Assembly (NCBI RefSeq): GCF_011386835.1
Contig: NC_088812.1
Span: forward strand, 12,028,001-12,092,000
Direction of reading: 5' to 3'
Length of the DNA stretch: 64,000 nt
Origin: Chrysemys picta bellii
Lineage: Eukaryota
The position numbers and the translations under genes are program-made. This document shows, one piece after another, positions 45,840 through 48,080 of the stretch. Under the pieces are notes generated by a model. That model worked only from the letters and a program-made list of their open reading frames with translations. It did no database searches and was not told the origin of the DNA. Each line of letters starts with the position of its first letter. The first letter of the stretch is position 1.

Positions 45840-47586
45840 CTAGAAGACAGTGGAAAGAAAAGCAAGAGGAATTTAGTACAAGTTGTGCTGCAAATACAGG
45901 CTATGTAGTATGAGAGAACAGAACAGTCTTCCATCCCACACCGCTGACAATTTTCTTTGAAGATGGCATGCCTGAATGTAGGGCTTGAGGCTGGAGACAA
46001 GAGCGTCTACTTCCCTCACCCCCAGCAGAGTTTAAATCTGGGCAGCAGGACAGGCTCTAGTTAGTCCCCAGTCAAATGCACGACACATCTGCCCTTATGC
46101 CAGGGGGCAGAAAGCTCCCGACAGACGGGCTTTGGTGAGAGTTCCACCTAATACCGATCCATCACACTTACTGAACTGTCCATCATTCATCCCTAGATGG
46201 AGCCATCTCAGAAGAGACTGCGAGGGACCACTGTGCCTCTGTTCAGACCCCCCCCCAGCCCAGATTTGCAGTATCAGAGGCCGTATTGCCCCTCTTTGGC
46301 GGCATCTGCCAGGTGGAAGCTCCAACCCCTTAGAAAGCTCATCCTAAGACATGGATGAAGACATGGCTACTCCTCCTGATCCCATGAGATGCCTCCTTTT
46401 ACATACTGTGGAAGATTTGCCTGACCAATGGTCAGTGCCCCGCTGCTGGAGGTGAGCCAGCAAATCCCAGTCTCCAGGAAGGAGGAAGAGGCTGAAGTAG
46501 AACTACTGCTCATGTCTAACCCCTCAGCCTCACGTTGTTAAGCCCTTTCGAGGGCAGCAGTCCTAGGAGGGCCACATCAGAGTAGTTTAGTTGTGCCGCA
46601 CAGCTCCTTCCTCTTTACAAGAGGGCCAAAGTCACTCAAGCAGATCAGAGACCCTAGGAAGGGGGATGAATCTCTCTAAATGCAAGCATCACCCAGAATC
46701 ACCATGTCTAGACATACAGGTGCAAGGACAGCAGGCAGACCCCTTTTGAGGGGGCCAAATTCCAGCTGTCTAGGTAAAGGACTTGTGTCAATGGGAGAAT
46801 TGCAGAGACCAAGGGTAGCCCCTTTCTCGTATGCAGTAATTACGGTTCTAGTTATTTGCTCAGTATTCACGGCACTCTGAACATCAGTGGGGAGGATGTG
46901 CTCAGTTTAGGGCTGCTGATTTCCCCATGCTAAATTACCTCTCCTCTGCACTCTCCTCGCCTGCACCAGCTCCCAGCCTAGGTCACTCCCATGCCACACC
47001 CTAGCCTATCACAATGCTCAGGAACGTGAGCGGTTGACGGGTAAAATGTTACTGTTAAGTGACCCCCCAGTGAGAGGTTGGTAGAAGCATCTGTGTTGGG
47101 GGAGAAGGAGTTCTCATGTCTCAGAGCTGCCATTCCAGCCAGTCTGCAGACACTGCCTTGCATTGATTTGCAGTCCCATATGTGGAAGCCCCACTTTACA
47201 GCCATGAGGATTGGAACATTATTCTAATGAAAGCTCATTCTGCAGCGCATGAGTAAGTCACACGAGTCACAAATGTATCGAGTGGCCCTAGCATCAGACA
47301 TCCCTGTGCTAGAAGGTGCAGAGGTCTCCACCAAATGTAAACATCCAAGTGCCCATTATGTGACATTCCTTCAGAGCCATGCCCAGCTCAGACCAATACC
47401 GATCTCCAACGCTCCAAGAAAGAAGAACCAGCTGTTGGATGACAAGAGTGGGTCTCTAGACTCTTCTGGTATGGCAGCTGCTCCCGCAAGTGTAACCCGA
47501 GGGAGATTGAAGATTTCTCCCTTCCCCACCACACACCAATAAAGACACTGAACAAAACCCCTCAGATGAGCGGTATTTACCAGCTT

Positions 47587-47924
47587 AGGGTCCTGTGGCA
47601 CCTTTGAGACTAACAGAAGTACTGGGAGCATAAGCTTTCGTGGGTAAGAACCTCACTTCTTCAGATGCAAATGTATCGAGTGGCCCTAGCATCAGACATC
47701 CCTGTGCTAGAAGGTGCAGAGGTCTCCACCAAATGTAAACATCCAAGTGCCCATTATGTGACATTCCTTCAGAGCCATGCCCAGCTCAGACCAATACCGA
47801 TCTCCAGAAGTGAGGTTCTTACCCACGAAAGCTTATGCTCCCAGTACTTCTGTTAGTCTCAAAGGTGCCACAGGACCCTCTGTTGCTTTTTTACAGATTC
47901 AGACTAACACGGCTACCCCTCTGA
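47587..47924. mobile_element. Penelope-like element terminal-repeat insertion (inverted pair with captured host DNA)
   Basis: 13-bp TSD TATTTACCAGCTT (47574-47586, 47925-47937); perfect 74-bp inverted repeats 47587-47660 / 47806-47879; internal 139 bp identical to 47270-47408. Confidence 0.85.
47628..47668 (-). ncRNA. Minimal type I hammerhead ribozyme motif
   Basis: GCAU-CUGAAGA-A-GUGAGG-UUCUUA-CCCAC-GAA-AGCU-U-AUGC: stem I GCAU/AUGC, CUGANGA and GAAA core, stem II, palindromic AGCU as stem III. Confidence 0.7.
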
Positions 47925-47931
47925 TATTTAC

Positions 47932-48080
47932 CAGCTTGCGGATCCTGTCGAGAACCAGGTCGATGATTTCTTTCCCAATGGTGTAGTGCCCACGGGCATA
48001 GTTGTTGGCAGCATCTTCCTTGCCGGTGATGAGCTGCTCGGGGTGGAAGAGCTGGCGGTAGGTCCCGGTGCGCACTTCAT
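47932..48080 (-). CDS. TUBA1B: Tubulin alpha-1B exon 3
   Basis: 149 nt; [49 protein letters not shown]|gtaaat. Confidence 0.97.

Follow-up and report, generated by a model that had tools for sequence, protein, structure and literature searches.

In 2005, Evgen'ev and Arkhipova reportedly described Penelope-like insertions as carrying an inverted, 5′-truncated copy together with a 30–40 bp tail on one side only. The inverted 5′-truncated copy and the 30–40 bp tail at just one end are regarded as hallmarks of these elements (PMC8557442, PMC3846280), and the Penelope protein of Anolis both cleaves and extends the two strands, its element offering two nearby internal start sites for reverse transcription with the tail lying between them (PMC11167929). 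Minimal hammerheads without helices I and III occur in Penelope repeats, those of turtles included (PMC4209133). In the rotifer Adineta vaga, host or unrelated DNA has been captured between Penelope terminal repeats within duplications, and palindromic inverted junctions are found (Arkhipova et al., 2013, PMC3846280). Penelope-like integration is nonetheless still poorly understood.

Inverted and chimeric insertions are also made by L1. In L1 twin priming the inverted part is copied from another stretch of the RNA, closer to its 5′ end, and in L1 5′-inversion and template switching by the reverse transcriptase both target strands prime, the junctions show microhomology, and a foreign template may be copied in mid-insertion to yield chimeric retrocopies. 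Fillers left by polymerase-theta end joining or MMBIR, for their part, have their templates no more than a few hundred bp from the break and show 1–3 nt of microhomology at entry and exit.

Here we describe, in Chrysemys picta bellii, a recent insertion of Penelope type whose architecture is ordinary but for an uncommon filler templated from its own flank, and whose position, at a splice donor, is notable (all coordinates are those of the window, the whole 64,000-nucleotide stretch of DNA that was analysed). It resembles described Penelope-like insertions (Craig et al., 2021, PMC8557442; Frangieh et al., 2024, PMC11167929) in its head-to-head inverted pair, its one-sided tail (45 nt here, 30–40 bp there), its putative hammerhead-like core, its heavy 5′ truncation and its short duplication of variable length (9–13 bp here), and differs from them in holding only ~120 nt of the element's 3′ end, in having no reading frame, and in enclosing a 139-bp spacer of host DNA. 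The capture of DNA between Penelope repeats is a kind of event already known from the rotifer, and the Adineta vaga captures (PMC3846280) likewise place non-element DNA between repeats, within bounding duplications, at palindromic or microhomology junctions. Those captures, however, lie between direct repeats or are of unknown origin and extend up to kilobases, whereas the turtle filler lies between inverted arms and is copied from 166–304 bp beside the target. The new details are the target-local origin of the filler and its position at the inverted junction: the filler at the centre of the inverted pair is the unusual feature, the inverted pair itself being ordinary.

Anatomy and age of the insert

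The insert comprises 338 bp (47587–47924). Its two sides carry perfect copies of a 13-bp target-site duplication, TATTTACCAGCTT, at 47574–47586 and 47925–47937. Read on the minus strand, the duplication is AAGCTG|GTAAATA and contains the exon 3/intron 3 donor of an alpha-tubulin gene. The copy at 47925–47937 (minus strand) holds the authentic end of exon 3 (47932) and the donor GT (47931–47930), and the copy at 47574–47586 (minus strand) holds a duplicate, intron-internal donor whose exon-like last base is 47581. A first-pass annotation of this DNA had claimed that the duplication includes the donor, which would now exist twice, 351 nt apart, and the sequence reproduces exactly this.

Between the two duplications lie an inverted element arm (47587–47667, minus strand, in the same sense as the tubulin transcript and without a tail), the 139-bp filler (47668–47806, plus strand), a direct element arm (47807–47879, plus strand, antisense to the gene) and a tail of 45 nt (47880–47924, plus strand; CTGTTGC...CAGACTAACACGGCTACCCCTCTGA), which is the 3′ end of the element and is found on the right side only. 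The 5′ start of the direct arm, GAAGTGAGG, is the same as the 5′ end of a solo copy of the element at 56394. The filler matches 47270–47408 (plus strand) at 139 of 139 positions and in direct orientation, its source lying within the same intron (intron 3) at 166–304 bp from the target site. The earlier reading of the insert as a terminal-repeat fragment, 139 bp of neighbouring intron and an opposite terminal repeat, with the captured host DNA joined by microhomology, is thereby recovered in full.

The reported perfect 74-bp inverted repeat is also found (47587–47660 against 47806–47879), at 74 nt if the A shared with the filler is counted and 73 without it. It lengthens to 80 nt at 98% identity because the end of the filler, ATCTCCA, matches the element's ATCTGAA in register. 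The microhomology of 1 nt proposed for each junction holds for the right one, an A that lies within an in-register 5/7 match (ATCT..A; by chance, 4 or more of the remaining 6 bases would match with a probability of ~0.04), but probably not for the left, where it is CA and probably CAA (2–3 nt), since other family copies align through 47670 and the inner end of the inverted arm may reach that position. In the 64-kb window the filler sequence is present only at its source and in the insert, and no element copy adjoins 47270–47408. The right arm starts GAAGTG and is missing the ~6–9 nt (TCTGAA) that many spacer-less copies keep at their centre. Before the insertion the empty site is expected to have read AAGCTG|GTAAATACCGCTC, with 47270–47408 in place.

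Arms and filler show zero differences in 213 compared positions. This perfect identity had been taken to imply a young event; the identity itself stands, but at 0.5–2e-9 substitutions/site/year it bounds the age of the insert from above only, at less than ~3.5–14 My, and gives no firmer date. Arm-to-arm gene conversion could erase differences, which makes identity a weak clock.

An abundant family with inverted pairs as its normal form

The arms of the insert belong to a family that is extremely abundant in this species; over four public runs, their summed k-mer depth in contigs is 1e5–1e6. Contigs with 99% identity or more to the stretch compared number in the thousands and by depth fall almost entirely on the arms, and this suggests recent activity of the family. 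In many contigs from other loci the left arm (47668–70) abuts the right arm (47806–09) with 0–4 nt between them, so that the filler occupies what is usually the centre of a family member. Two further copies lie in the window: an older inverted pair (58028–58228), with a 9-bp duplication (GAAACTCTA), arms that share ~78–86% identity with the young copy, a centre (CTTCAGCTGCATGGCTGAAG) that is nearly palindromic and a tail confined to the right side, and a solo direct copy (56394–56509), with a 10-bp duplication (ACTGATAAAA), which starts GAAGTGGG. The target-site duplications around the three copies in the window are thus 13, 9 and 10 bp long. The inverted pair, rather than being peculiar to this event, is the normal form of the family, given the pair at 58028–58228 and the many spacer-less junctions in public contigs.

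The distribution of the tail is consistent among these copies. In both inverted pairs of the window the inverted arm stops just before the last 40–45 nt, and the direct copies carry that 40–45 nt tail (alignment A1). The solo copy at 56394 and the right arm of the young insert have the same 5′ end, GAAGTG, and the foot of the putative hammerhead helix II may thus be favoured as a 5′ end. The inverted arm contains a hammerhead-like core, consisting of CUGAAGA, a hairpin that folds and GAAA, followed by GCUUAUGCUC; judged by its letters, this putative ribozyme corresponds to the core of the minimal Penelope hammerheads (PMC4209133). A scan of 47000–48500 gave no match to the Rfam hammerhead models at E <= 10. 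An Rfam match to mir-12 at 47599–47867, on both strands, reaches 27.6 bits against a gathering score of 55, and was set aside as reflecting the inverted repeat and not a microRNA.

A literature search on Penelope elements in turtles returned no description of the family, and a literature text search for the tail sequence returned no match. Within the 64-kb window, with its three short copies, no autonomous Penelope reading frame was tied to the arm family. We accept the insert as a putative Penelope-like, non-autonomous fragment, an identity that is drawn from its layout and putative core. The original assignment to a Penelope-like retroelement insertion is borne out by the inverted 5′-truncated copy, the one-sided tail, the putative hammerhead-like core and the duplication (PMC8557442, PMC11167929, PMC3846280).

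Origin of the filler

On balance, and with little more than even confidence, we take the 338-bp insert to be genuine, a short and non-autonomous fragment of a Penelope-like element that was inserted in the germline and acquired its filler by template switching while the cDNA ends were being joined. The anatomy of the insert, the normal inverted form of the family, the asymmetry of the tail and the microhomologies are direct observations. The element endonuclease would have made staggered cuts in the two target strands, 13 nt from one another and on either side of the exon 3/intron 3 junction, giving rise to the duplication, and the same 3′ part of the element would have been deposited twice in opposite orientations, as is usual for Penelope-like elements. 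The right-hand copy, if begun at the outer reverse-transcription start site, would carry the 45-nt tail, and the left-hand copy, if begun at the inner site, would be without it. Two cDNAs of the same RNA on opposite strands are identical and not complementary, so microhomology is their only means of joining, and joining of this kind yields fillers whose template lies nearby and is copied ahead of the final annealing. Before such joining, one cDNA 3′ end may have switched template to intron sequence 166–304 bp away, entering at CA/CAA, copying 139 nt and leaving at the A of the in-register ATCT..A, and then annealed to the other end.

Either end may have made this switch. If it was the plus-strand end (left arm), its template would have been of minus sense, either the minus DNA strand or the tubulin pre-mRNA. 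If it was the minus-strand end (right arm), synthesis could have run along the left flank on a plus strand made single-stranded by resection, after which this end would have dissociated and annealed through TTG:CAA. The order of these events, the polymerase involved and the template, DNA or tubulin pre-mRNA, are what we infer. One bolder version, which we consider rather improbable, is that the cDNA of the left arm, having been primed on the plus strand, switched from the element RNA to nascent alpha-tubulin pre-mRNA at the insertion site, and that the insertion is still segregating. The polarity would fit a pre-mRNA template, as the plus strand of the filler is the complement of the minus-sense transcript, with entry at CAA/UUG. 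If true, such a jump would preserve, in nature, an instance of a Penelope reverse transcriptase using host intron RNA at its target site as a template, and a segregating insertion would put a duplicate donor and a 74-bp dsRNA stem into an essential gene.

The first-pass annotation had proposed template switching or twin priming onto adjacent host sequence, as a case of local transduction. The part of this proposal concerning host DNA joined by microhomology is retained. L1-type twin priming resembles the turtle insert in both-strand priming and microhomology joins, but it was rejected, because it needs an inverted segment that is more 5′, yet both turtle arms copy the same segment and cover the same element positions. 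‘Local transduction’ is a misnomer, as the captured DNA comes from beside the target and not from the flank of a source element; retrotransposon 3′ or 5′ transduction was likewise rejected, the extra DNA being sequence 166 bp from the target with no adjoining element.

The most serious competitor to template switching during integration, though still an unlikely one in our judgement, is a history in two steps. A spacer-less inverted pair would have been inserted first, and the centre of its palindrome would have broken later, as a hairpin or cruciform, with templated repair from the nearby intron; microhomology-mediated repair of the polymerase-theta or MMBIR type would have added 139 bp at the cost of a few nt of the right arm. 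Spacer-less inverted pairs are indeed the common form, in public contigs and at 58028–58228, and the microhomology at both junctions suits end-joining repair. Revision of a broken palindrome centre would also resemble what is seen here in a filler templated from nearby with 1–3 nt of microhomology, but 139 nt is longer than typical of polymerase-theta fillers, and the break in this case would be one made by, or within, a retroelement insertion. The start of the right arm at GAAGTG, without the TCTGAA kept by many copies, would fit erosion after a break at the centre; however, the solo copy at 56394 begins at exactly GAAGTG as well, which makes this a normal 5′ end and erosion unnecessary, so the loss of TCTGAA argues neither way. 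Against two steps there is also the zero divergence in arms and filler, which would require both events to be close in time.

If template switching during integration is correct, this zero-divergence insert, which keeps both inner cDNA ends, the asymmetry of the tail and the templated filler, would be a natural snapshot of end joining. Should many such insertions have fillers derived from their flanks, Penelope-like elements would be shuffling local host DNA.

Evidence from public contigs

Evidence on other individuals comes from the assembled contigs of public runs, whose organism labels A, B and C correspond to one species label. The best public run contained 0.80 of 59 sampled words of 47200–47945, with none higher, and no contig among the matches listed spans the composite structure. 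A second comparison used 10 sampled words of 47557–47698, the individual positions of which are not given: 7/10 were present in each of 19 listed runs from ten organism labels, and these seven we take to be arm words. Run X1 had 9/10, i.e. two of the three words missing from the other listed runs, and we infer that the three words absent elsewhere span the insert junctions. The X1 contig differs from the window by eight sites and two indels at full depth, so that X1 represents a different individual from the assembled animal. It ends exactly at 47586, as would be expected if sequence both with and without the insert continued from this point.

Contigs of X1 and X6 cross both 47270 and 47408 without a break (the filler source is crossed with both flanks by X1 record 3 and X6 record 21). 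The two additional words of X1, together with its unbroken contig at 47270 and 47408, would fit the filler-less allele of a history in two steps, but no filler-less allele at the insert site is found among the public contigs listed. In X6, contigs over intron 3 are of low depth and none of those listed reaches the insert junctions; our guess is that X6 is an RNA run. Over 1.76 kb, X5 shows a single contig break, exactly at 47408, the right edge of the duplicated segment, and record 10 of that run aligns over 47379–47573 and then continues for 35 unaligned letters. That length equals the 13-nt duplication plus 22 nt of exon 3, which would bring the end to 47959, 28 nt into exon 3; X5 record 10 thus probably carries the empty site, to judge by the length of its unaligned part. 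Should there be a paralogue elsewhere with the same exon 3 end and donor GT, shared 30-mers would presumably begin there. No contigs on record encode P0038 or the exon-4 reading frame, and none encode three chance reading frames (two across the insert junctions and one native-intron control). Taken together, the run signals, which are indirect and partly pull in opposite ways, suggest a real insertion that is possibly segregating within the species.

That the insert, or only its 139-bp centre, stems from mis-assembly or from a chimeric or fold-back long read at a high-copy palindromic repeat seems to us very unlikely. Penelope tandem and inverted structures are known to trouble assembly (PMC8557442), and both the ceiling of 0.80 over 47200–47945 and the lack of the composite among the contigs listed would agree with an artefact. 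However, contig simplification beside a very high-copy repeat can drop junction paths, so a missing junction means little, and a perfect 13-bp duplication with microhomology junctions is a signature of integration and not of mis-assembly. Nor would an artefact fit the two words of 47557–47698 that an independent individual, X1, has and the other listed runs lack, or the position of the sole X5 contig break, which falls exactly where it is expected if the filler/right-arm junction exists. Least credible, to a degree that we find hard to entertain, is that the 139 bp form part of a composite mobile unit or a classical transduction whose source element was in, or came from, this intron: rotifer Penelope elements can mobilise unrelated sequence between their repeats (PMC3846280), but here the 139 bp are single-copy by contig depth in three public runs, where they sit in native context in other individuals, are confined in the window to source and insert, adjoin no element copy at 47270–47408, and keep their 139/139 identity up to sharp microhomology edges.

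The alpha-tubulin gene and its duplicated donor

The gene that carries the insert at its exon 3/intron 3 boundary is an alpha-tubulin gene on the minus strand. Its exon 3 (47932–48080, 149 nt) ends AAG CTG and is followed by GTAAATA, and the coding part of exon 4 occupies 44865–45839, with the acceptor AG at 45841–45840 (TAG) and the exon starting at 45839. In a comparison against representatives of 90%-identity clusters, the exon-4 product matches primate TUBA1B isoforms at 100% identity, as it does a bird protein labelled alpha-1C; the name TUBA1B given to the gene at first is therefore reasonable but not exclusive.

The authentic donor (47932|47931) is intact from −6 to +7, so that normal splicing would remain possible. 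If the duplicate donor, which is found 351 nt inside the intron, were used, these 351 nt would be included and a premature stop would follow after 10 codons, the stop that had been reported for the distal-donor reading frame and that our translation of the read-through returns. This stop is >300 nt upstream of the next junction. The usual rule for nonsense-mediated decay is 50–55 nt, by which the predicted transcript would be a target for decay. Splicing from the duplicate donor, degradation by nonsense-mediated decay and A-to-I editing stand here as predictions from the DNA.

The insert region of the pre-mRNA folds at −225 kcal/mol, compared with −131 for shuffles (z = −15.8). In the predicted fold the pre-mRNA would form a 74-bp stem extending from a point 52 nt past the authentic donor right up to the duplicate donor, in agreement with the long dsRNA stem that had been placed about 50 nt from the donor. 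This is an unusual position, the duplication spanning the donor of a tubulin gene that is essential and highly expressed, and if polymorphic the insertion would serve as a natural experiment on how identical donors compete next to a long dsRNA stem.

A second alpha-tubulin gene lies 12 kb away on the minus strand (59941–62230). Its exon-4 product is 99.4% identical, its introns are much shorter, and its exon 3 ends AAA TTG | GTAGAT; this second gene may buffer any cost of the insertion. Its intron 3 was considered as a stand-in for the empty site and rejected, as it gave no alignment to intron 3 of the first gene.

Three further features of the first gene may be recorded. The tubulin reading frame ends (44865–44880) with ...EGEEEGEE-stop, the usual C-terminal tyrosine being absent. 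In intron 3, X1 and X6 differ from the window at 47141–47178 by a 10-bp insertion (CAAGCAGACC or GCAGACACAA) and several nearby substitutions, and this stretch is an indel-prone short tandem motif. Upstream of exon 2, in intron 1 or the promoter region, a minisatellite (49927–51816) consists of ~20 copies of a G-rich 93-bp unit with 92% matches, and yields long, spurious proline-rich reading frames on both strands.
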